The position numbers and the translations under genes are program-made. A DNA stretch of 64,000 bases from the sequence record PV340851.1; one strand, written 5' to 3'. Shown piece after piece: positions 26,876 through 49,981 of the stretch (positions are counted from its first letter, which is position 1; every line of letters starts with the position of its first letter). The notes below the pieces were generated by a model. The model was not told the DNA's origin and made no database searches. It saw only the letters and a program-made list of their open reading frames with translations.

Positions 26876-28259
26876 GAAACTGGAGACCACTATACTGCGA
26901 AACTTACTTGCCAGCGAGGAGTTCTATCGCAAAGTGGTTCCATTTCTGAAACCTGATTATTTCGAGGAGATGTCAGACCGAGTAGTCTATGAAGAAATTC
27001 AAGACTTCTCGGGTAAGTATGACAAAGTGCCAACGTCAGAAATTATTATCTTACAACTGCAGCAAAGAAATGACCTCACCGAAGAAACTTATCAAGAAGC
27101 TGTTAAACAAATTAAGGCGTACACAGACGAATACGTTGACTGCGCCTGGCTCACAGATGCTACCGAACGTTGGTGTCAAGAACGAGCCATTTATAACGCC
27201 CTCCTCCTATCGATCAAAGTCGCAGATGGAGGCGATAAGACTCTCACACGCGATGCGATTCCAGGAATACTCCAAGAAGCCTTGGCAGTATCATTCGATG
27301 AATACATCGGGCATGATTATATCGAAAATGTAACAGAACGATATGATTTCTACCACAAAGATGAGGCGAAGATTCCTTTCGACCTTGAGAAGTTCAATGC
27401 CATCACCAAAGGAGGTCTCCCCAATAAGACACTTAATATTGCTCTCGCTGGTACTGGGGTGGGCAAGTCTCTTTTTATGTGTCACTCTGCCGCTGCGTGT
27501 CTTTCGCAAGGGAAGAACGTTTTGTACATCACATGTGAGATGGCTGAGGAAAAGATTGCAGAAAGAATTGACGCTAATCTCCTCAATGTCAACATACGGG
27601 ACATCGCTGCATTACCAGAGCAGATATTCACTTCGAGAATATCTGAGATTGGAAGAAAGACACAAGGTAAGATCGTTATTAAAGAATACCCTACAGCAAG
27701 CGCACATGTTGGGCATTTTAAATCGCTCCTCAACGAACTCTCGTTGAAAAGATCTTTTAAACCTGACATCATTTTCATTGACTACCTAAATATTTGTGCG
27801 TCGTCAAGATACAAAGGACACATCGTAAACAGTTACACATACGTGAAGGCAATCGCTGAGGAACTGCGTGGTCTTGCTTGTGAACATGATGTACCTATTG
27901 TCTCTGCCACACAGACTACCCGAAATGGATTCGGCAATAGTGATGTAGAGCTTACTGACACTTCTGAATCTTTCGGTCTGCCTGCTACTGCTGATCTTAT
28001 GTTTGCTCTAATCTCTACGGAGGAACTGGAGCAGTCTGGTCGCATCATGGTTAAGCAGTTGAAGAACAGATACAATGATCTAACTACGTATCGCCGCTTC
28101 ACTGTCGGTATTGACAGATCAAAAATGAAGTTGTATAATGTTGATGATGAACCAACAGATCTTTCTACCGTAACAGAGCAAGAAGATCCTTCCGATTCTT
28201 TCGAGGACATCTCCAAGCGCCAGTCACGACTGGACAAATTTAATTCCTTTATTATCTAA
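26865..28259 (+). CDS. gp41: Replicative DNA helicase
   Basis: Motifs [12 protein letters not shown] and [11 protein letters not shown]. Confidence 0.97.
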
Positions 28260-28261
28260 CA

Positions 28262-28669
28262 ATGTCTAAAGTAAATTTTGATCGTTATCAAGAATTTGTG
28301 TCTGAAGTTACTAGCGAAGCTAGTACAAATTTTGTTGATTTTGCTGACCGTATTGGTGATCTCGATCGACAAGGTGCCAATATTGAGAGACTTCTTACTA
28401 GTGGTGTTGGAATTAATGCTGAGGGCGGTGAGTTCCTTGAGATCATTAAAAAAATGGTCTTCCAAGGAAAACCGTGGAACGAAGATAATCGTGAGCATCT
28501 TATCATTGAGTTGGGTGATATCATGTGGTATGTTGCTCAAGCATGTATGGCACTTGAAGTATCTTTCGACGATGTAATCGAAACTAATGTCAACAAACTC
28601 AAGAAACGTTATCCAGGAGGAGAATTCGATGTCTTCAAATCCGAAAACCGTGCATCAGACGACCGATAA
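28262..28669 (+). CDS. mazG: MazG-like NTP pyrophosphohydrolase
   Basis: Motifs EGGEFLEIIKK, ELGDIMWY and KLKKRYP. Confidence 0.93.
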   Translation: MSKVNFDRYQEFVSEVTSEASTNFVDFADRIGDLDRQGANIERLLTSGVGINAEGGEFLEIIKKMVFQGKPWNEDNREHLIIELGDIMWYVAQACMALEVSFDDVIETNVNKLKKRYPGGEFDVFKSENRASDDR

Positions 28670-28670
28670 G

Positions 28671-28805
28671 ATGTATCACATCTATGACGACAACGGAGTC
28701 GTCATACATTCTTTGCAAGAGGAGGACTTCGACCTCCTCTATGATGCTACGAGGCATGAGTACGAAGAATGTATTATTGTCAAGAACGAAGAGGCATCTT
28801 ATTAG
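28671..28805 (+). CDS. Hypothetical protein (44 aa)
   Basis: MYHIYDD... fills the gap between mazG and the JmjC-like gene. Confidence 0.55.
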   Translation: MYHIYDDNGVVIHSLQEEDFDLLYDATRHEYEECIIVKNEEASY

Positions 28806-29456
28806 ATGACATTTGATTATGCTGGGTTGATCCGACGACCTGCTGAATACATTCCTGGTGCATTTGATCCAGGACTTGTGACCATAGAAGATATTGAAAA
28901 CTATCTAAATGATCACAAGTATGCTCATAAAGAACTGGAATGTATTCACCCTGACACAGGGTTAAAACTAAACTACGAGACGCACCATGGTCCATGGAGA
29001 GGCACCTATGACCCCGATGTCATAGAGAATCTATGGAACATCGGTGCGTCTTTTATTTTGCAGACACCTTATGTTAATTCTAAGGTCAAGCAAATGGTCA
29101 AAGCAATTGAAGAATCTAATCATGTCTCATGTGACGCACACATATACCATGGTAAGAAAAACAGTTCTTCTTTTAAACCACATTGCGATAATAGCATTAA
29201 TTTGGTGGTGCAATGCAAGGGACACTGCAGATGGAAGGTGTGGAGTATAATTAATAATAGTGTAGATACGTACCCAGACCTAAGGGAGAGACCAGCACTG
29301 GAGGTTGTCATGAACCCAGGTGATGCTATCATCGTACCTAAGGGACAGATCCATCATGCTCAACCCCTCACCGATAGAATCAGTGTTAGTTTCGCTTTCT
29401 CCCCAGGACCAAAGACAATCCAACGAAATATTAGTCTGGATTGGGACTCTAAATAG
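28806..29456 (+). CDS. JmjC/cupin-type 2OG-Fe(II) oxygenase
   Basis: HxD...H triad: FKPHCD, LVVQCKGHCRWKVW and PGDAIIVPKGQIHHA. Confidence 0.8.
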   Translation: MTFDYAGLIRRPAEYIPGAFDPGLVTIEDIENYLNDHKYAHKELECIHPDTGLKLNYETHHGPWRGTYDPDVIENLWNIGASFILQTPYVNSKVKQMVKAIEESNHVSCDAHIYHGKKNSSSFKPHCDNSINLVVQCKGHCRWKVWSIINNSVDTYPDLRERPALEVVMNPGDAIIVPKGQIHHAQPLTDRISVSFAFSPGPKTIQRNISLDWDSK

Positions 29457-29478
29457 TTGTGTAGACTAGGGTCTTAGC

Positions 29479-30714
29479 ATGAAAGCAGGAGACTTTGCCA
29501 GAAACGGAGGCAAATACCTAGACCGAATCGATACTTTCTTCGATAAAGCACTAGGTAGAAATGGAAAGGAGAATAGATTCCTCACTGACGTTGGCGTCGT
29601 AGAGGTTTCAGGTTTCCAAGTGACTCAGAAGCAGGGAAAGAAGTATAAGAAGTCTAAGTTTATAGACCTGCATGGCATGAAAAGAACTGCTGAGTCAGAA
29701 GCAAAGCAACTGTTCCAATCAATCTGTCTAGCAGGTTTTCGTGGACAGAATAATATAGAATTTACATGTAATTTTCCTGCTGGACCAGATACACCAAGAG
29801 CAATCAGCAGTAGAGACTTTGAATTAGAACTAGCAGACTTTGAAAAGACTGGTGAGTTTGGTGGTCAGGTCAAGGGTGGCAAGAAAGTCAACATGGGTAA
29901 TCAATATGAAGACGATCTTACTGAATCATTGATCGCATACTGCTCTGGTGAACCAGTCAAGAAGTACAAAGATCATGTAGATCAGATTATTGGTGCTCTC
30001 ACGGCAGCATATGGTGAGGGACCAACCAAAGCAATAGGAGAGGGTGGTTTTAACAAAGCACGACCTCTTAAGAAGAGAGGAAGCAACATTATTATCTCTG
30101 CGGGTGGTGCAGATACCCTAAACATCGGGTCTACACTCACAGATATCACACTAGAAATTGCTGGCAAACCTGTATATCTCTCCGTAAAGTTTGGCAGCAC
30201 ACTCTCATTCTTTAACTGTGGCGTCAAAGGTGGTGGCACTGGTAAACTATCTTTGTTCCCTGAGCAGAAATTGAAGTCAGGTGAGATTCCTGCAGACGGT
30301 CAACTATACCTTGACATGTTTGGTATCAACCATCAGAAATTCCTGGATGTTTGGGAAAATTATGGTAAAACTGGTGGTCCTACGGTCCCTGGTCACATTG
30401 CAGAGACTACTTTGAGTTCTAAAGGTAAGAGAGCACTGGAAGATTTGATCAAAAGTGGTGTGGGGTATGGGTATTGGATGTGTCATTACACTGGATCTGC
30501 CCTACATTTCTATGAGATCGATAGAAAGTATATGGAAGACGCTGCTACTCTCCTAAGTAATAAGGTAGAAGTAAACTATGGTGGTGTTTCTGGTACAGGT
30601 AAGCGTATTGATATGATTTTTGAGACGAAGACCTACGAATTCAAATTCAACATCAGAAACAAGCAAGGTGGGGTCTATCCTACCCACAGTAACGGAGACT
30701 ATTATAAAAAGTAA
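29479..30714 (+). CDS. Hypothetical protein, putative PD-(D/E)xK-fold nuclease
   Basis: GNQYE...TLTDITL...YLSVK matches an E...D...SxK active-site variant; follows late promoter 29449. Confidence 0.5.
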   Translation: MKAGDFARNGGKYLDRIDTFFDKALGRNGKENRFLTDVGVVEVSGFQVTQKQGKKYKKSKFIDLHGMKRTAESEAKQLFQSICLAGFRGQNNIEFTCNFPAGPDTPRAISSRDFELELADFEKTGEFGGQVKGGKKVNMGNQYEDDLTESLIAYCSGEPVKKYKDHVDQIIGALTAAYGEGPTKAIGEGGFNKARPLKKRGSNIIISAGGADTLNIGSTLTDITLEIAGKPVYLSVKFGSTLSFFNCGVKGGGTGKLSLFPEQKLKSGEIPADGQLYLDMFGINHQKFLDVWENYGKTGGPTVPGHIAETTLSSKGKRALEDLIKSGVGYGYWMCHYTGSALHFYEIDRKYMEDAATLLSNKVEVNYGGVSGTGKRIDMIFETKTYEFKFNIRNKQGGVYPTHSNGDYYKK

Positions 30715-31916
30715 TGGCAAACGTAACTCAACTCAAGCACTTAGAACACCTAGAAGATGAGATGCTCAACTATGGAGTTGAGGGATGTGTGGCGTCAGTC
30801 AATTTCCTAAAGGAATTGATGAAGATGTTAGGCAAAAAATCTGACGCCAGTGGATTTTTGCAGACAAAATGGGACGGAGCACCATCAGTTATCTGTGGAA
30901 CGTCACCTACAACAGGCATGTTCTTTGTTGGAACTAAGTCAGTCTTTAATAAGACTGAACCTAAGACATGTTTTACTGAAGAGCAGATTGATGTCTGGTA
31001 TCAGGGTGACTTGGCAACTAAACTGAAGTATGCTCTAAGATATTTTCAAGAACTAGACTTTGATGGTGTCATCCAGGGTGATCTTCTGTTCACTGATGAC
31101 ACTCTCGACACTAAAACAGTGGACGGCGAACAGTATTATATGTTCCAACCCAACACTATTACCTATGCTGCCCCTGTAAACAGTCCCTTGGGTAAGCAAC
31201 TCAAGGCAGCAAAGATAGGTGTGGTGTTCCATACCCACTACACAGGTGATGTACTAGCAGATATGCAAGCAAGAGCTGGTGCAAAGGGTGTCAAGGGTAA
31301 TCAGCATGTTGCTGTCATCCAAAACGACACTCCCATCAATAAAGTAACACTTTCTGTTACAGAGATCTCAGAATTAAATCGACACATCGCTAAAATAGAA
31401 AGGATGTGTAAAGTATGTGGGGACTTCTTGGATGATCTTGTGTCAAACTTTGGTACTACTGGCGATGCTAAATTTCATATCTCTACTTATCTTAAACCAT
31501 TTTTCAACTCAGAGATTAGAGACAGGCGCAATGTTGGAAACATTGATGAGACTATATACGCTCTGGTAAACTTCTACGATGCCAAGATGCAGAAGGAGTT
31601 GGCGAAGATCAAGACACCTGCTAACAGGGTGAAGAAGTGCAATCTGGTCTATAAGAGTGAGAACTACCTGATCGATAACGTGTACAAGTTCAAGGCGATG
31701 CTTGCATTGTACAAAGAATTCCAGATTATCAAACAAAAGATCATAGATAAATTGGACCACCTTGAACAATTCAAGACGTTTGTCCAGACTGAGAACGGAT
31801 ACAAGGTGACTACACCTGAGGGATACGTTCTCCACCAGGACGGCAGCATGATCAAACTGGTCAATAGACTAGAGTTTGCCTACAACAACTTCACCCTACA
31901 GAAACAATGGCGCTAA
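30714..31916 (+). CDS. Conserved protein with ATP-dependent ligase / nucleotidyltransferase motifs
   Basis: TKWDG (motif I), IQGDLLF (III), VVFHT (IIIa), PEGYVL (IV) and IKLVNR (V). Confidence 0.65.
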   Translation: MANVTQLKHLEHLEDEMLNYGVEGCVASVNFLKELMKMLGKKSDASGFLQTKWDGAPSVICGTSPTTGMFFVGTKSVFNKTEPKTCFTEEQIDVWYQGDLATKLKYALRYFQELDFDGVIQGDLLFTDDTLDTKTVDGEQYYMFQPNTITYAAPVNSPLGKQLKAAKIGVVFHTHYTGDVLADMQARAGAKGVKGNQHVAVIQNDTPINKVTLSVTEISELNRHIAKIERMCKVCGDFLDDLVSNFGTTGDAKFHISTYLKPFFNSEIRDRRNVGNIDETIYALVNFYDAKMQKELAKIKTPANRVKKCNLVYKSENYLIDNVYKFKAMLALYKEFQIIKQKIIDKLDHLEQFKTFVQTENGYKVTTPEGYVLHQDGSMIKLVNRLEFAYNNFTLQKQWR

Positions 31917-32470
31917 ACTGTATCAAATGCTATTTTACCTTCGGTAGGTTTCAACCACCCACCACAGGTCACAAAGAGAACTTCGATGGGGTGAAACGCA
32001 TCGCGGGTGGGCATGACTATAGGATCTATATTTCTCAGACATTCGATGAGAAGGGCAAGAATCCTTTGCCACCTGACAGGAAACTGTTTTATATGGAGAA
32101 GATGTTCCCAGAACACAAGGGCAAGATCTTTTCTGGACCTAAAGATCCTGTAGCTATCATGCAAGATCTTATGATGGCAGGGTATAATGAGGTTATATTC
32201 TTGGTAGGATCTGATAGAGTAAACGCTATGCAGTTCCTTCATAAATACAACGGAAAGGATTTTTCCTTTCGCAAGATTGAAATACGATCTTCAGGTAGCA
32301 GAGATGCTGACGGTGATACGTTTGCTATTTCAGGTACAAAGATGAGACGTGCAGCATTTGCTAACGATTTCAAACTCTTCCGCCAGGGTATACCCAGGGC
32401 ATTGAATGATAAAGACTGTAAGATGATGATGGATGAGATTAGAAAAAACCTGCCAGCAAACTTTAAATGA
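31907..32470 (+). CDS. HxGH-superfamily nucleotidylyltransferase (cytidylyltransferase-like)
   Basis: FTFGRFQPPTTGH, VGSDRV and ISGTKMR. Confidence 0.85.
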   Translation: MALNCIKCYFTFGRFQPPTTGHKENFDGVKRIAGGHDYRIYISQTFDEKGKNPLPPDRKLFYMEKMFPEHKGKIFSGPKDPVAIMQDLMMAGYNEVIFLVGSDRVNAMQFLHKYNGKDFSFRKIEIRSSGSRDADGDTFAISGTKMRRAAFANDFKLFRQGIPRALNDKDCKMMMDEIRKNLPANFK

Positions 32471-32745
32471 AAAATTTTAAAGAACTAAAGAACAAAGCGT
32501 TCCAAGAAGGTTTTAGACATAAGAAAACATTCTGTGAGGGTGACGTTGTTATGTCTGCTGTCACAGGTGAGAAGGGTAGAATACACAGAGCAGGTGTCAA
32601 CTATGCAATCTGTGTAACAGAGTCTGGAACCATGTTTCGCGCATGGGTAAAAGATCTGCGCGAGGTTGCAACAATTGAAACCATAAATAAAGAAAGGAAA
32701 AGCAGTATCTTTACAAATAATGGAAAGGCAAAAACCAATCAATAG
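32467..32745 (+). CDS. Small beta-barrel (SH3/KOW-like) hypothetical protein
   Basis: EGDVVM...GEKGRIHRAGVNYAIC...MFRAW; ATGA-coupled to the nucleotidyltransferase. Confidence 0.65.
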   Translation: MKNFKELKNKAFQEGFRHKKTFCEGDVVMSAVTGEKGRIHRAGVNYAICVTESGTMFRAWVKDLREVATIETINKERKSSIFTNNGKAKTNQ

Positions 32746-33490
32746 CGTTCAGCATAACGATGAGTTTTCCAAGGCACTCATCGAGTCCTATGGTCGCTGG
32801 ATGGGCGGCGCAGGGTTTGGGTGGCACCTTAATGAAGAAGGAATTCCTGCCGAGCAGAAGCAAGGTGAGGAACAACCTACCCGTGAAGGTGGTGCTGACG
32901 CTTCAACATCGATTCCCGATCTTTCTGGTAAGGAGGAGAAGAGTGATGAAGGACCTAAAGATATCAAAGCAAATGCAGGTGCTCCTGATCCTGCTACCGA
33001 TCTTCGCGTCGGTGCAGGTGTCAAACAGTCTCACGGAGCAGAAATTAAAGACACCACGAAGGTGGTTGCAAGGGAGGCAAAAGGTGATTGCTGCTCTTAC
33101 TGCGGAGGGGAAGGGTGCTCCCGCTGTCAGAAGGAAGATAAGGAAGTAAAGAAAGAGACTGTTGAGTTTGAACTTAACGGTGAGACATACATCTTTGAAG
33201 CAGAAAAGAAGAAAGGACTTGACGGCAAGGCATGCTGGAAAGGTTATAAGCAGATGGGCACCAAGAAGAAGGGTGGCAAGACTGTTGACAACTGTGTCAA
33301 GGCAGGTTACGAACCCGAAGGTCAAGTGCTTGGTGAAAAGAAACTTGATCCCGTAGGTAAGGAAGACAAGGACATCGATAACGACGGTGACCACGATAAG
33401 TCTGACAAGTATCTACTTGCTCGCCGTAAGAAAGTTACCAAACTGATCGGCAAGAAAAAGAAGATGAAGGAAGAAGCTGAAAAAAAGTAA
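32720..33490 (+). CDS. Charged low-complexity late protein, possibly extended by a -1 frameshift to 33585
   Basis: Late promoter at 32683; contains CWKGYK and DIDNDGDHD motifs; ends GAA AAA AAG TAA. Confidence 0.8.
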   Translation: MERQKPINSVQHNDEFSKALIESYGRWMGGAGFGWHLNEEGIPAEQKQGEEQPTREGGADASTSIPDLSGKEEKSDEGPKDIKANAGAPDPATDLRVGAGVKQSHGAEIKDTTKVVAREAKGDCCSYCGGEGCSRCQKEDKEVKKETVEFELNGETYIFEAEKKKGLDGKACWKGYKQMGTKKKGGKTVDNCVKAGYEPEGQVLGEKKLDPVGKEDKDIDNDGDHDKSDKYLLARRKKVTKLIGKKKKMKEEAEKK

Positions 33491-33607
33491 AGAAGCCAGT
33501 GGTTGAGATCATGCCTGAGATTGACGACGGCGAACAAGATCGTAAACCAATGAAACCTGGCAAACTGAAGAACAAGAATAAATAATCTTGCACCTTGCTA
33601 TAAGATC

Positions 33608-33820
33608 ATGCTTGCATTCCTACTACCACTCGCATCGAAGATTGTCGATGCTGCTATTGCTAAGATTCCCGACGATGAGGATCTGGGTGAGAAACTGATT
33701 GAAATCTGCCTACACATTTTGCGTAAGGCAGTATCACTGACCAAAACAGATATTGACGACCAACTACTTGCGGTAGTTGAGAAAGCAATTGCCACCCGAG
33801 AAGAAGCACCAGCTGAGTGA
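33608..33820 (+). CDS. Hypothetical protein
   Basis: 70 aa, after late promoter 33578. Confidence 0.75.
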   Translation: MLAFLLPLASKIVDAAIAKIPDDEDLGEKLIEICLHILRKAVSLTKTDIDDQLLAVVEKAIATREEAPAE

Positions 33821-33829
33821 ACATAAATG

Positions 33830-33860
33830 GGGACCTTAACGGTCCCTTTTTTTATAAATA
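33830..33860 (+). terminator. Terminator followed by a consensus T4 late promoter TATAAATA
   Basis: GGGACC-TTAAC-GGTCCC plus T tract; TATAAATA at 33853-33860. Confidence 0.88.
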
Positions 33861-33891
33861 CATAATAGCAAAAGTAATCTTTGGAGATCCA

Positions 33892-34467
33892 ATGTCCCTA
33901 TACGGAAGAACGGACAGCAATGCTAACAAGACCAAAGCTGGTCGTGGAGTGTCTGCATCGTCCCAAGCAAAACAAATTCTATTCATTGACGACACAGAAG
34001 CAGCACTCGCGGAAAACAAAGCACGCGGTCTGAATGCTCCTGGTTGGTGGTCCTACTACACCTATACCGATACGGAAGGTCACACTCGTCATAAGGCAGA
34101 GATGCTGGTAACCATTGCTGGTCCTGATCTCAATGCTAACGAGACCCAGGCAGACGACGCTGCAGCAGCAGATGTTTCTGTTATCATTACCATCAATACT
34201 CAACCTGCTACTCAGGCAGTTGCTGTTGGTGATCCACTATCCTTGAGCGTTGCTGCTATTTCCACACCTCCTGGTGATGCTTCCACGCTTCAGTATCAGT
34301 GGCAGAAGAAGTCTGGCAGACGCTGGACAAACATCGGTGCTAATCAACCCACCTATGATGTTGATCCTTATGCTGCTGAGAATGCTGGTGACTACAGAGT
34401 CAAGCTCACCACCACTACTGGTGCTTCTGAAGTAATTTCCGACACCGCTACTGTAACTACTGCCTGA
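33892..34467 (+). CDS. Virion structural protein with a C-terminal Ig-like domain
   Basis: GGAG SD before MSLYGRTDS; Ig pattern LQYQWQK...AGDYRVKL. Confidence 0.8.
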   Translation: MSLYGRTDSNANKTKAGRGVSASSQAKQILFIDDTEAALAENKARGLNAPGWWSYYTYTDTEGHTRHKAEMLVTIAGPDLNANETQADDAAAADVSVIITINTQPATQAVAVGDPLSLSVAAISTPPGDASTLQYQWQKKSGRRWTNIGANQPTYDVDPYAAENAGDYRVKLTTTTGASEVISDTATVTTA

Positions 34468-34474
34468 TGAATAA

Positions 34475-34831
34475 ATGATCTTCGATGAATTGACACCAGA
34501 AAACTGGATGTTCTTTGCTATTAAACATTATGACAATCCAAATTCTGTCACATATAGTGACTTTGAAGAAGATCTAAATAGAATCAGATATATCAAAAGA
34601 TTACTTAAAAGATTCGAGACATCAGGTGAACTCAAAACTCACCTGATTCTCAATCATATAATAGTAATGTATAATGTATTTGGTGATGCCGCAACACCTT
34701 TGTTGTTTTACAAAACCGAAGCAACCCATTGGTCTTATCTTAAAGCGTTTATGCTTTTCTTAGATAGACTACCTGATAGTTTAAACAAGGATGTAAGTCA
34801 AGAATGTCTAAAGCAGTTGAATCTAATCTAA
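34475..34831 (+). CDS. Conserved T4-like hypothetical protein
   Basis: FAIKHYDNP, DFEEDL.RIRYIKRL and LILNHIIV. Confidence 0.8.
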   Translation: MIFDELTPENWMFFAIKHYDNPNSVTYSDFEEDLNRIRYIKRLLKRFETSGELKTHLILNHIIVMYNVFGDAATPLLFYKTEATHWSYLKAFMLFLDRLPDSLNKDVSQECLKQLNLI

Positions 34832-34836
34832 ATGAA

Positions 34837-35511
34837 ATGATGGCGGGAGACGGATCAGGTCTCGCGCTACCTCCTGCTTTTGTCTTTGTTAATACAAAGG
34901 CAGGTCGTAAGACTAAGAAGAAATCTGATAAGGTTGATGGTCGTACAAGCGGTGCTAAACAGATGCTCTCTCGTATCAATAAAAGAAGTAAAATGAAAGA
35001 AGAATTAGAAACACAACTTTCTGAAGCTGCTCCCTCAGAAACTGAGAGAGCACAGAAACAGATTCAGCAACAAAAGAAACTGAATCGTTCTAAGGATCTG
35101 CAAAAGAAGCGCGAAGAAGCGAAGAAAAAAATGCAGTCCAAGACAAAAGAAATGGACACACTTATGAAGGCACGTCTTTCTGACTTTAAAAAGAAAGCAA
35201 GTGACCAGACTAAGAAACTTAAGAAAGAAGAAACTGAATTGACTACCGACATGATTAAAGAAAATTCTGACGCACTTGAAGTTGCACTCGATGTTGCAAC
35301 TCAGGAACTCGATCCTCGTGGTGAAACTAACTTCGCGAAGATCACATTTAATGATGGTTCTCAGCAGAACCTAGATAACTTCTCGGCGAAGAGAATTGCT
35401 GCTGCCTATGCACAATTGGATGAACCCAAGCAACTGCAGTATCGTTACATGCTGAACAAGGACGCTTCTACATTCCAATCCGCCCTAGACTTCGCAATTA
35501 AAAACGTTTAG
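34837..35511 (+). CDS. Hypothetical basic coiled-coil protein
   Basis: Track ORF 34804..35511; likely start MMAGDGSG. Confidence 0.75.
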   Translation: MMAGDGSGLALPPAFVFVNTKAGRKTKKKSDKVDGRTSGAKQMLSRINKRSKMKEELETQLSEAAPSETERAQKQIQQQKKLNRSKDLQKKREEAKKKMQSKTKEMDTLMKARLSDFKKKASDQTKKLKKEETELTTDMIKENSDALEVALDVATQELDPRGETNFAKITFNDGSQQNLDNFSAKRIAAAYAQLDEPKQLQYRYMLNKDASTFQSALDFAIKNV

Positions 35512-35521
35512 CAATACTAAG

Positions 35522-35956
35522 ATGGCATTCGGTCTAGGTAGATTAGCGGTCCTTGAATCAAAGCTCGACATTTATGAAGACCTATCACAACAAATGCTCG
35601 ACAAGCTTGAAAAAGCAGTAGGGACTATCTCAGAAAATAGCAACAGAGTTGCTATCATTTTGGAGCGTCATGAAAACAGACTGGATGAAAGCGAGAGGGC
35701 AGATAAATTGATTATCGGTATGTTGGAAGAGATGAAAGAGAGGCACGAAAAGGATAATGAAACTATCCACAACAGAGTGTCTACTCTTCAAAAGAAAGTA
35801 GATACTAATGCTAAGTTTGTGATCGGTGCTGGTGCTGTTCTTGCTACTATTGTGACAGTGTTACAAGTGGTCCCACCTCTGGTCAAGATGTTGACACCCA
35901 CTGCTAATGGTGCTATCATGGGCACAGCGACACCATTACTCAGTGAGTTATCTTGA
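35522..35956 (+). CDS. Coiled-coil protein with a C-terminal transmembrane helix
   Basis: Hydrophobic FVIGAGAVLATIVTVLQVV; adjacent to primase. Confidence 0.75.
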   Translation: MAFGLGRLAVLESKLDIYEDLSQQMLDKLEKAVGTISENSNRVAIILERHENRLDESERADKLIIGMLEEMKERHEKDNETIHNRVSTLQKKVDTNAKFVIGAGAVLATIVTVLQVVPPLVKMLTPTANGAIMGTATPLLSELS

Positions 35957-36932
35957 TACTAAGTATATTAATCTAGTATCACCACAACTGAATAAGTTTA
36001 CGCGAAAGAACGACAGAACGTATAACTTTCGTTGTCCATATTGTGGTGACTCTAAGAAGCATACTAATAAAGCTCGTGGATACTTTTTCAAAGTTAAGAA
36101 TGACTTTGTATATAAGTGTCACAATTGTGGTGTTGGGCGTACATTTACTAATTTTCTGAAGGATCAGTGTCCTCATCTCCATGATCAGTATGTCATGGAA
36201 AGATATAAAGAAGGACTGACAGGTAAGGGATCTCAGACAGCAAATCCCAAGTTTAATTTCAAACAACCTGTCTTTAAAACATCAAAAGTAATAGATCTTA
36301 CAGTTGTCTCGGAACTAAATAAAGAACATCCTGCAAGGCAATACTTACAGAACCGAAAAATTGAAGATCTAGACTCATTTTACTACTGTCCTAAATTTAA
36401 GGACTGGACTAACAAGCAAAAGAAAACGTTTGATACCTTAAGGCAGGATAGTCCTAGAATTATTATCCCATTGCGGGACAAAGATGGAACCATGTTTGGT
36501 TTCCAAGGGAGATCTCTTGCTCCAAAAGCAAAGATCAGATACATCACAATCATGCTTGACGAATCTAAACCCAAGGTGTATGGGTTAGATCGTATTGACC
36601 AATCGCAACCTGTATATGTCACCGAAGGACCCTTCGACAGTCATTTCATTAGAAATGCTATTGCTATGTGTGGTAGCGATGTTAACCTCAGCACTCTGGA
36701 TTGTGAGTTTGTATACACCTACGACAACGAACCAAGAAACCGAGAGATCATTGCTAAGATTGAGAAATCAATTAAGGCAGGATCTAAGGTAGTAATATTT
36801 CCCAAGAGCATCAAAGAAAAGGACCTGAATGATATGGTTCTTGCTGGACACAATGTACAAAATCTGGTAGAATCAAACACTTACCAGGGACTCGAAGCAA
36901 CCCTTAAACTGAACGAATGGAAAAAAGTATGA
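35943..36932 (+). CDS. gp61: DNA primase
   Basis: Zinc finger CPYCGDS...CHNC; TOPRIM motifs VTEGPFD and YDNEPRN; GTG start. Confidence 0.96.
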   Translation: MSYLDTKYINLVSPQLNKFTRKNDRTYNFRCPYCGDSKKHTNKARGYFFKVKNDFVYKCHNCGVGRTFTNFLKDQCPHLHDQYVMERYKEGLTGKGSQTANPKFNFKQPVFKTSKVIDLTVVSELNKEHPARQYLQNRKIEDLDSFYYCPKFKDWTNKQKKTFDTLRQDSPRIIIPLRDKDGTMFGFQGRSLAPKAKIRYITIMLDESKPKVYGLDRIDQSQPVYVTEGPFDSHFIRNAIAMCGSDVNLSTLDCEFVYTYDNEPRNREIIAKIEKSIKAGSKVVIFPKSIKEKDLNDMVLAGHNVQNLVESNTYQGLEATLKLNEWKKV

Positions 36933-49831: not shown

Positions 49832-49905
<74 letters not shown>

Positions 49906-49909
49906 CCTC

Positions 49910-49981
49910 GCTTGCTTAGCTCAGCGGTAGAGCATCTCGTTTACACCGAGGCGGTCGGCGGTTCGATCCCGTCAGCAAGCA
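49910..49981 (+). tRNA. tRNA-Val (anticodon TAC)
   Basis: Acceptor stem GCTTGCT/AGCAAGC; anticodon loop TTTACAC; T loop GTTCGAT; CCA not encoded. Confidence 0.96.

Follow-up and report, generated by a model that had tools for sequence, protein, structure and literature searches.

DUF6267 and an HxGH-superfamily partner as a candidate two-enzyme nucleotidyl-transfer module in a late-promoter gene block of Synechococcus phage Sf-CH3 and other marine T4-like phages

In this study we have analysed a block of coupled genes in a 64,000-nucleotide (nt) stretch of Synechococcus phage Sf-CH3 (record PV340851.1), which we refer to as the window. The block comprises, in order, a hypervariable gene, a gene of the DUF6267 family, an NMNAT/NadR-like transferase, a KOW/SH3-like tail, a charged virion-associated protein, a small open reading frame (ORF) and a terminator. 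The first gene (29479-30714, plus strand, as for all features given here; phrog_8438) encodes a protein of 411 amino acids (aa) with an E...D...SxK motif and fills the hypervariable slot 5' of DUF6267. It is followed by the gene for the 400-aa DUF6267 protein, a putative RNA-ligase-like lysine nucleotidyltransferase with K52 as the predicted nucleophile (30714-31916), by that for a 187-aa nucleotidyltransferase of the HxGH superfamily, a TxGH variant labelled cytidyltransferase in GenBank (31907-32470), and by that for a 92-aa candidate KOW/SH3-like barrel which matches the C-terminal part of the phrog_395 cytidyltransferase (32467-32745). The overlaps between these four successive genes are 1, 10 and 4 nt. 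A fifth gene, which overlaps the 92-aa gene by 26 nt, encodes a 256-aa charged protein with a Cys cluster and a DNDG-type motif (32720-33490; phrog_4359) whose homologues are virion-associated, and a 70-aa ORF, SfCH3_161 (33608-33820), is the final gene ahead of a terminator-like GC-rich hairpin (33829-33847; a 7-bp stem with five G-C pairs, then a run of seven T). This hairpin is the first strong one of its kind after the coupled block and is likely the 3' end of the transcription unit. At the front, a T4-type late-promoter-like CTAAATA (29449-29455) precedes the ATG of the first gene by 24 nt and falls within the last codons of the upstream JmjC gene. The first-pass annotation of this DNA had proposed a late four-gene operon, and the four plus-strand ORFs, their coupling and the CTAAATA ahead of them were all confirmed. 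The coupled unit thus stands, but it had been drawn too long in front, where the 411-aa gene is interchangeable, and too short at the back, where the 256-aa and 70-aa genes follow. We propose that the core of the block, the DUF6267 protein and the 187-aa enzyme, is a conserved, uncharacterised two-enzyme nucleotidyl-transfer module which probably acts on RNA.

The 400-aa protein is a full-length member of PF19782 (DUF6267; E 5.5e-120), a family of more than 8000 clusters at 90% identity in one search and of 2328 clusters at 50% identity. It occurs in 416 phage records, about 400 of them from cyanophages and the others from phages of Pelagibacter, Methylophilales, Vibrio, Stenotrophomonas and Pseudoalteromonas. 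The literature that we searched contained no paper mentioning DUF6267, and the annotation spelling 'cytitidyltransferase' likewise led to no papers. The ordered set of covalent nucleotidyltransferase motifs ascribed to this protein earlier is present in full: KWDG (with K52), QGDLLF at residues 121-126, VVFH at 170-173, EGYV at 369-372 and KLVNR at 381-385. Conservation falls on the same residues. The invariant columns of a 46-sequence alignment (mean column identity 41%) include K52, D54, G55, K75, D123, H173, T174, E369, G370 and K381, and in a non-redundant set of 91 sequences, less than 60% identical to each other, H9, H12, E14, K52, D54, G55, K75, Q121, D123, Y151, H173, T174, E369, G370, K381 and R385 are 95-100% conserved, the K-x-D-G residues of motif I (K52, D54 and G55) reaching 98-99%. 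The AlphaFold (AF2) model of the protein (pLDDT 91.8, pTM 0.87) consists of a long N-terminal helix, a beta-rich domain (48-201) with motifs I-IIIa, a five-helix insert (215-350) between motifs IIIa and IV, two beta hairpins (354-383) bearing motifs IV and V, and a single helix. Motifs III, IIIa, IV and V lie in this order on the model strands 119-127, 168-177, 370-375 and 378-383, an agreement at the level of sequence and secondary structure only. The lack of a C-terminal oligonucleotide-binding (OB) domain, which had been suspected from the sequence, is borne out by the model, where only the one helix comes after motif V. A short cyanophage variant of about 308 aa retains both the N-terminal and the C-terminal motif regions; its alignment lacked the depth to be informative (Neff 1.8). 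The idea that DUF6267 is a cellular family was rejected, as a genome scan found members almost only on phage-like contigs of metagenome-assembled genomes (MAGs). The sole DUF6267-like match on a clearly cellular-sized contig, on a 5.2-Mb scaffold of an Anaerolineae MAG (L288:5293-6240), is an ORF of 316 aa which covers only family residues 64-126 (E 3e-23 against PF19782).

Is DUF6267 related to the ligases, as its motifs suggest? When the model was compared by Foldseek with the predicted viral structures of the BFVD, its own family came first, including the 591-aa fusion protein of S-PM2 (TM-score 0.93), and beyond it RNA ligases were the only recurring named matches: the RNA ligase of Agrobacterium phage Atu_ph07 (E 2.4e-3, probability 0.92), Rnl2 of an Aeromonas phage (E 0.036), two Marseillevirus proteins (E 0.08 and 0.11) and one of Catovirus (E 0.15). 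One of the 46 DUF6267 members matched the Pfam family RNA_lig_T4_1 (PF09511; E 0.0037). The 400-aa protein itself gave no match above the Pfam threshold to the T4 Rnl1 family or to any ligase family, and a profile search of the PDB sequences with DUF6267 returned no ligase; PDB sequence and profile searches with the 400-aa and 411-aa proteins brought up chance matches only (eS8, a Hit-like protein, an acyltransferase and a designed protein). We also compared profiles directly by hhalign, using T4 Rnl1, Rnl2 and DNA ligase families built from IMG/VR relatives. The C-terminal piece of DUF6267 aligned with Rnl1 motifs IV-V at P 0.0009-0.0024, and the N-terminal piece with motifs I-Ia at P 0.2-0.4, with K52-x-D-G falling on the K-x-D-G of Rnl1 and K75 on a conserved Rnl1 Lys. 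For comparison, the true relatives Rnl1 and DNA ligase gave P 0.023, Rnl1 and Rnl2 P 0.078, and Rnl2 and DNA ligase P 0.34, while the best unrelated pair, the 411-aa protein and the transferase, gave P 0.016. The DUF6267-Rnl1 score is therefore the best of the matrix, obtained by a method that cannot prove membership even for real members. Alignments of the DUF6267 profile with the single sequences of T4 Rnl1 and T4 DNA ligase were not significant, and the Rnl1 score was not raised when divergent members from MAG contigs were added to the profile. Taken together, the fold and profile evidence for a relationship between DUF6267 and the RNA ligases is suggestive, not decisive; we consider it reasonably probable that DUF6267 belongs to the covalent nucleotidyltransferases and, within these, to the RNA-ligase kind.

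The association of DUF6267 with the HxGH enzyme was examined in 80 IMG/VR loci found by the DUF6267 profile, of which 73 had enough downstream DNA to be informative. In 63 of these 73, the transferase gene lies downstream on the same strand, and in 48 of the 63 it overlaps DUF6267 or stands no more than 53 nt away, the 10-nt overlap of Sf-CH3 being the typical arrangement; in two the genes are fused. Fusions in both orders occur among the metagenome representatives at 50% identity, S-PM2 also has a fusion, and the PHROG profile phrog_455 spans both domains. The arrangement is kept in HTVC008M, P-SSM4, S-RSM4, S-SZBM1 and Melnitz, and the module is common to the T4-like marine phages (Kyanoviridae), namely cyanomyoviruses, Pelagibacter phage HTVC008M and Methylophilales phage Melnitz. 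The genes for the 400-aa and 187-aa proteins, placed in one system by the first-pass annotation, are thus not independent of each other. Exceptions were nevertheless found. No DUF6267 was detected among the genes tested beside the transferase of S-SCSM1 and SynMITS9220M01, and in the ACG-2014f group the best DUF6267-like match, confined to the N-terminal half, is about 95 kb from the transferase. Six loci of a separate DUF6267 clade (L045, L046, L057, L066, L069 and L080) have no transferase within 8 kb. Five of the six (L045, L057, L066, L069 and L080) carry a conserved coupled ORF of 230-260 aa on the 5' side, and in L046 the gene 5' of DUF6267 encodes a 1285-aa LysM-domain protein; apart from LysM, Pfam gave nothing informative for the neighbours of this transferase-less clade.

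The 187-aa protein contains TTGH (19-22) and ISGTKMR (141-147), which had been compared with the motifs of NadD/CoaD-like enzymes, and profile comparison with the PDB bears out its membership in the HxGH superfamily, nearest to NMNAT and NadR. It is matched by PHROG cytidyltransferase families (phrog_3041, E 8.5e-71), and its relatives reach PF01467 with 27-31 bits against a cut-off of 21 bits. The motifs of the family are G-R-F-x-P-P-T-x-G-H and S-x-T-K-M-R, and S142 and R147 of the S-x-T-x-x-R motif are invariant in its alignment. The best PDB matches were the Methanocaldococcus jannaschii NMNAT (1f9a; E 0.0015), NadR (E 0.012) and other NMNATs (E 0.07-0.4), a marginal similarity that extends mostly over the N-terminal 65 residues; the score against TIGR01526 was 15.9 bits, the cut-off being 341. 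We counted 556 phage records with the transferase; among them are jumbo phages of E. coli, Pseudomonas, Klebsiella and Erwinia in which no DUF6267 is nearby. In terms of isolate genomes, the transferase is present in about 460 and DUF6267 in about 400. In other relatives it is fused to a RimK-type ATP-grasp domain together with a zinc protease, to a Pol-beta nucleotidyltransferase, to DUF5824 or to an HNH motif. Such metagenomic fusion proteins have 650-1325 aa and several nucleotide-activating domains (L049:5537-8671, P0351, L060:6690-8933, L070:7678-9657 and L053:3148-6789). Could the 187-aa gene be an ordinary auxiliary metabolic gene, for NAD (nicotinamide adenine dinucleotide) biosynthesis or as a glycerol-3-phosphate cytidylyltransferase for the envelope, with unrelated neighbours? 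The name 'cytidyltransferase' in GenBank and PHROG, the literature that lists the transferase among metabolic genes or calls it NMNAT, and its occurrence by itself in jumbo phages would agree with this. However, in many lineages it is fused to DUF6267, to the KOW-like barrel or to motifs of virion proteins, it is translationally coupled through a conserved 10-nt overlap, and it lies behind a late promoter motif and is present in virions. The family-wide Thr in place of the first His of HxGH and the merely marginal similarity to PDB structures also do not favour a standard metabolic enzyme, and we regard this explanation as very unlikely.

Most relatives have the 92-aa protein as a C-terminal domain within the transferase; in Sf-CH3 this tail domain is split off as a gene of its own. 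The earlier description of a small beta-barrel may hold: 19 of the 20 weak PDB matches of the 92-aa profile are KOW or SH3-like barrels, but none is significant (Spt5 KOW E 0.14, uL2 E 0.5, uL24 E 2.5-4.4). GenBank and phrog_4808 label this gene 'ribonucleotide reductase alpha subunit', for which our analysis found no support; as the S-PM2 homologue already bears this label, it looks like a propagated error. The 256-aa gene belongs to the module, since several lineages have motifs of its product fused to the transferase or to the SH3-like tail domain of that enzyme. The 256-aa product has a high content of charged residues and its gene is purine-rich, with an AT skew that reaches 0.196 and a GC skew of 0.153 in the 32-34 kb bin. 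Besides the Cys cluster, the protein has an acidic D-N-D-G-type motif, which recurs in PHROGs 38880, 764, 3326 and 22379 and in large multidomain proteins of other marine phages. In S-SCSM1 a 69-aa protein annotated as a virion protein is encoded at the position equivalent to that of the 70-aa ORF, the correspondence being by position alone.

The picture is different for the first gene of the block. The 411-aa protein is a well-folded orphan (AF2, pLDDT 89) with a family of 271 clusters, and it had been called nuclease-like because of the pattern E...TD...SxK. The pattern is indeed there (E144, T221-D222 and S235-x-K237) and is invariant in 25 relatives. In the model, E144 is on a helix, and D222 and S235-x-K237 are on two successive strands, a placement that would be compatible with a PD-(D/E)xK core. 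The motif pattern is the only part of the nuclease claim that fits. We found no nuclease match in Pfam, in PDB sequences and profiles or in PADLOC, which gave nothing for any of the six block proteins, and Foldseek against the PDB gave no match for the model, the best E-value being 0.47. The gene is present in 24 phage records, compared with 416 for DUF6267, and in 12 of the 80 loci. Where present, it immediately precedes DUF6267 without exception; the two genes overlap, save in one locus where 74 nt separate them. Elsewhere the slot is filled by proteins of 230-580 aa plus the 1285-aa outlier, belonging to at least three other families which have no profile similarity to the 411-aa protein or to one another. 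The 411-aa gene, previously counted as a member of the system, is therefore an interchangeable accessory gene. Two ways of unifying the slot proteins were rejected: fast evolution from a common origin with the 411-aa protein does not account for them (every pairwise hhalign P value was 0.11 or higher), and no common N-terminus was visible that could be a shared targeting peptide. The slot occupants compared were those of L006, L007, L131, L133 and L009-L088, and in most of these loci the slot gene overlapped DUF6267. In L002 and L131 (SynMITS9220M01 and S-SCSM1) a tRNA-Ala gene is immediately 5' of the slot gene, which directly precedes a transferase-barrel fusion. The idea of a cut, activate and join system, with the 411-aa protein as the nuclease making the ends, could appeal to the invariant residues, to their modelled placement and to the constant position directly upstream of the module. 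The scarcity of the gene, the non-homologous families in the same slot, the negative nuclease searches and the annotation of the S-SCSM1 slot protein as a virion protein make such a system very doubtful. Of that earlier proposal, the conserved and linked pair of a motif-bearing ligase-like protein and an HxGH enzyme stands, whereas 'cut' is unsupported, because the 411-aa protein is not a conserved member and has no nuclease match. The hypervariable slot offers a lead of its own to phage-host specificity factors.

When are these genes expressed? A review gives the late-promoter motif of cyanomyoviruses, from S-PM2, as NATAAATA (PMC2984593). Over the whole window CTAAATA shows no enrichment: it occurs 11 times where 8.2 would be expected, and 15 of 100 shuffles had at least 11. 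The significance of the site at 29449 lies instead in its position, which is conserved across loci. We counted CTAAATA or ATAAATA in 48 related loci that have a coupled gene 5' of DUF6267 and enough flanking DNA, and in 39 of the 48 found (C/A)TAAATA no more than 80 nt 5' of the gene that opens the block; by comparison, 4.5% of windows of 80 nt taken at random contain it. The sites lie mostly at -24 to -32 relative to the start of the first gene, and the motif is retained whichever protein family fills the first position. The late unit behind CTAAATA that had been read from this one locus thus has its counterpart in related phages, and on this sequence evidence we interpret the block as a late transcription unit. 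No transcriptome in the literature searched named the genes of the block.

Homologues of several proteins of the block have also been found or annotated in virions. The transferase homologue of S-SCSM1 ('NMNAT', ORF91) was detected in the virion proteome, the same was noted for S-CBWM1 and another estuarine phage, and the authors propose that the protein is carried in the virion (PMC9602691); altogether the transferase is reported from the virion proteomes of S-SCSM1, S-CBWM1 and S-SZBM1 (PMC9602691, PMC9146016). Four products carry the label 'virion protein' in the S-SCSM1 record: the slot protein, the transferase, the homologue of the fifth gene and the 69-aa protein. The homologues of the 256-aa protein recorded as virion proteins are S-SZBM1_139 and S-SCSM1 gp280, and the S-SZBM1 virion list includes both gene 140, which encodes the transferase with its tail domain, and gene 139, the fifth-gene homologue. 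Does the block then encode virion or assembly proteins, with DUF6267 taking part in morphogenesis like T4 gp63 and its enzyme-like motifs secondary to a structural or chaperone role? The conserved late-promoter motif, the detection or annotation of the transferase, the fifth-gene homologue and the S-SCSM1 slot protein as virion proteins, and neighbouring genes for Ig-like head or tail-fibre proteins would all be in line with such a role. Moreover, the best remote similarity of DUF6267 is to the family of T4 gp63 (Rnl1), which the T4 record describes as 'RNA ligase and tail fiber protein attachment catalyst'. On the other hand, charged and polar active-site-like residues that are almost fully conserved in very divergent members are the pattern of an enzyme, DUF6267 is missing from the S-SZBM1 virion list, and its fusion to a second nucleotide-handling enzyme is poorly explained by a purely structural role. 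We therefore regard a morphogenetic function as unlikely.

The genomic setting suggests yet another possibility. Sf-CH3 and Sf-FP1, which both have 100% identity to the studied region, are T4-like cyanomyoviruses from a sponge symbiont system (PMC12284385). In Sf-CH3 the block sits within the cluster of replication genes, with genes for the clamp loader, RegA, Hsp20, DNA polymerase, UvsX, the gp41 helicase, MazG and a JmjC-type oxygenase on its 5' side and genes for an Ig-like head protein, several small products, the gp61 primase and NrdAB on its 3' side. Immediately 5' of the block are the gene for the MazG pyrophosphatase (28262-28669) and that for a JmjC/cupin 2-oxoglutarate oxygenase-like protein (28806-29456). 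A perfect 12/12 match to a sigma-70-type promoter (28111-28139; TTGACA, a 17-nt spacer and TATAAT) lies in the 3' end of the gp41 helicase gene, just 5' of mazG. An Rfam scan of 27000-36000 found no family, and the block region is also free of tRNA genes; adjacent genes for tRNA-Arg (TCT) and tRNA-Val (TAC) are found at 49832-49981. It may be asked whether DUF6267 is the 'missing' replicative nick-sealing ligase of cyanomyoviruses, with the NMNAT-like partner supplying or recycling NAD as the adenylyl donor. In such a cycle the ligase would release nicotinamide mononucleotide (NMN), from which the transferase would rebuild NAD with ATP. A review finds no recognisable gp30 DNA ligase in cyanomyoviruses and leaves open a distant homologue that has not been identified (PMC2984593), and DUF6267 is present in about 400 cyanophage records. 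The position of the block between DNA polymerase, UvsX, gp41 and MazG on one side and gp61 and NrdAB on the other, and the closeness of the transferase to NMNAT and NadR, would also suit a replicative ligase, and the N-terminal helix with H9, H12 and E14 ahead of motif I could hold the dinucleotide leaving group. However, a conserved late-type motif precedes the block and no early or middle promoter of replication genes was identified, the partner proteins are found in virions, and the fold matches are to RNA ligases, not to DNA ligases. The 400-aa model lacks any OB or DNA-binding domain, the resemblance of the tail domain is to KOW barrels that bind RNA, and DUF6267 against the T4 DNA ligase family gave an hhalign P of 0.1. 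A replicative role thus seems improbable to us.

We favour an explanation in which the block is a late, coupled module whose RNA-ligase-like DUF6267 protein and HxGH enzyme work as one machine, and as a whole we hold it to be slightly better than an even bet. DUF6267 would form a lysyl-nucleoside monophosphate at K52 and hand the nucleotide to a 5'-phosphate end, which would thereby be sealed or capped. The HxGH enzyme, acting together with it, may make or regenerate the nucleotide donor, a NAD-like dinucleotide formed from ATP and a phosphorylated acceptor; alternatively, it may nucleotidylate the same substrate as DUF6267. The KOW-like barrel would tether the pair to RNA. Since they seem to be late products that are packaged at least in part, the proteins could be active during assembly or at the onset of the next infection, RNA damaged by host defences being one possible target.

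A number of observations weigh against this explanation. On the side of DUF6267, Foldseek found no PDB match to the 400-aa model at E <= 0.001, and the top 50 matches contained no RNA ligase, the crystal structures of T4 Rnl1 and Rnl2 included, while DNA ligase 1 came up only at E 1.2. The TM-scores of the RNA-ligase matches in the BFVD are low (0.15-0.24), PHROG scans of the 46 DUF6267 members gave no ligase family, and the profile signal to Rnl1 is just about ten-fold better than that of the best false pair. The earlier description of the 400-aa protein as ligase-like finds support in its ordered and conserved motifs, the lack of an OB domain and the RNA ligases among its named fold matches, but not in Foldseek against the PDB or in Pfam, neither of which gave this protein a significant ligase match. 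On the side of the partner, the 187-aa protein alone has no Pfam family match, T-x-G-H with Thr for the first His of HxGH is found in 22 of 22 aligned members (G21 and H22 being invariant), and the transferase exists alone in jumbo phages of E. coli and Pseudomonas. As to the pairing, ten loci of a separate clade have DUF6267 with no transferase nearby, and in S-SZBM1 the DUF6267 protein, encoded by gene 141 (E 3e-144), is absent from the 30 listed virion proteins. Finally, RNA is suggested as the substrate only by the weak KOW-like matches and by the kind of ligase matched.

A more specific version of the favoured explanation would be a self-contained adenylyl-donor cycle. Here the NMNAT-like enzyme would build a NAD-like dinucleotide, DUF6267 would use this dinucleotide, not ATP, to adenylylate K52 by means of its extra conserved N-terminal helix, the released mononucleotide would be recycled in place, and RNA ends would be sealed or capped. 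We think this version quite unlikely, but if true it would be the first NAD-type RNA ligase, and perhaps a virion-carried RNA-repair device that works after host NAD has been destroyed or RNA has been cleaved. Both members of the pair were known as conserved genes; the ligase-like nature of DUF6267 and its pairing with the transferase were not described in the literature searched. They are among the most widespread genes without an assigned role in marine T4-like phages, and the transferase continues to appear in lists as a metabolic 'cytidylyltransferase'. A ligase-type machine for RNA or DNA ends, if this is what the pair forms, would represent a new architecture in the ligase superfamily. 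It would then also bear on the old question of why a recognisable ligase is missing from cyanomyoviruses, and it would account for the recurrence of an NMNAT-like protein in cyanophage virions.

How does the proposed module compare with systems that are already known? Like T4 Rnl1 and other lysine nucleotidyltransferases, DUF6267 carries, in order and on strands, K-x-D-G, motif III (acidic), motif IIIa (aromatic), motif IV (E-G) and motif V (Lys-containing), and its local profile alignments fall on the cognate motifs of Rnl1. As in RNA ligases, there is no OB domain. Unlike T4 Rnl1, it has a five-helix insert of about 135 residues between motifs IIIa and IV and not a helical domain after motif V, the single Lys of its motif V precedes a conserved Arg, its motif III has an Asp, and there is an extra conserved N-terminal helix with two His and a Glu. 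It also differs in that it stays below the Pfam ligase thresholds, has no Foldseek match to solved ligases and is paired or fused with an HxGH enzyme; to our knowledge, no described RNA ligase has such a partner. The 187-aa family shares with the M. jannaschii NMNAT MJ0541, with NadR and with PF01467 the G-R-F-x-P...G-H loop and the S-x-T-x-x-R motif, and its best PDB matches are NMNATs. It departs from them in the Thr that replaces the first His of HxGH, in a marginal similarity that mainly concerns the first 65 residues, in its fusion to the KOW-like barrel, DUF6267, DUF5824, a RimK-type ATP-grasp domain or a Pol-beta nucleotidyltransferase, and in its presence in virions. With PD-(D/E)xK nucleases the 411-aa protein has in common a conserved Glu located on a helix and, on two successive strands, an Asp where the first begins and S-x-K in the second, but it has a Ser in place of the usual acidic residue, no fold or profile match, and two further conserved domains with no known counterpart.

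Phage tRNA-repair and NAD-reconstitution pathways employ nucleotide-dependent end-joining and NAD-related enzymes and have been proposed to counter host defences. By pairing a ligase-like with an NMNAT-like enzyme, the block recalls both the tRNA repair of T4 (Pnkp and Rnl1) and NAD reconstitution. In contrast to these pathways, it contains no gene for end-healing by a kinase/phosphatase and none for Nampt, a Nudix protein or an ADP-ribose pyrophosphokinase, and it has no PADLOC match. Moreover, it looks late and partly virion-borne, not early.

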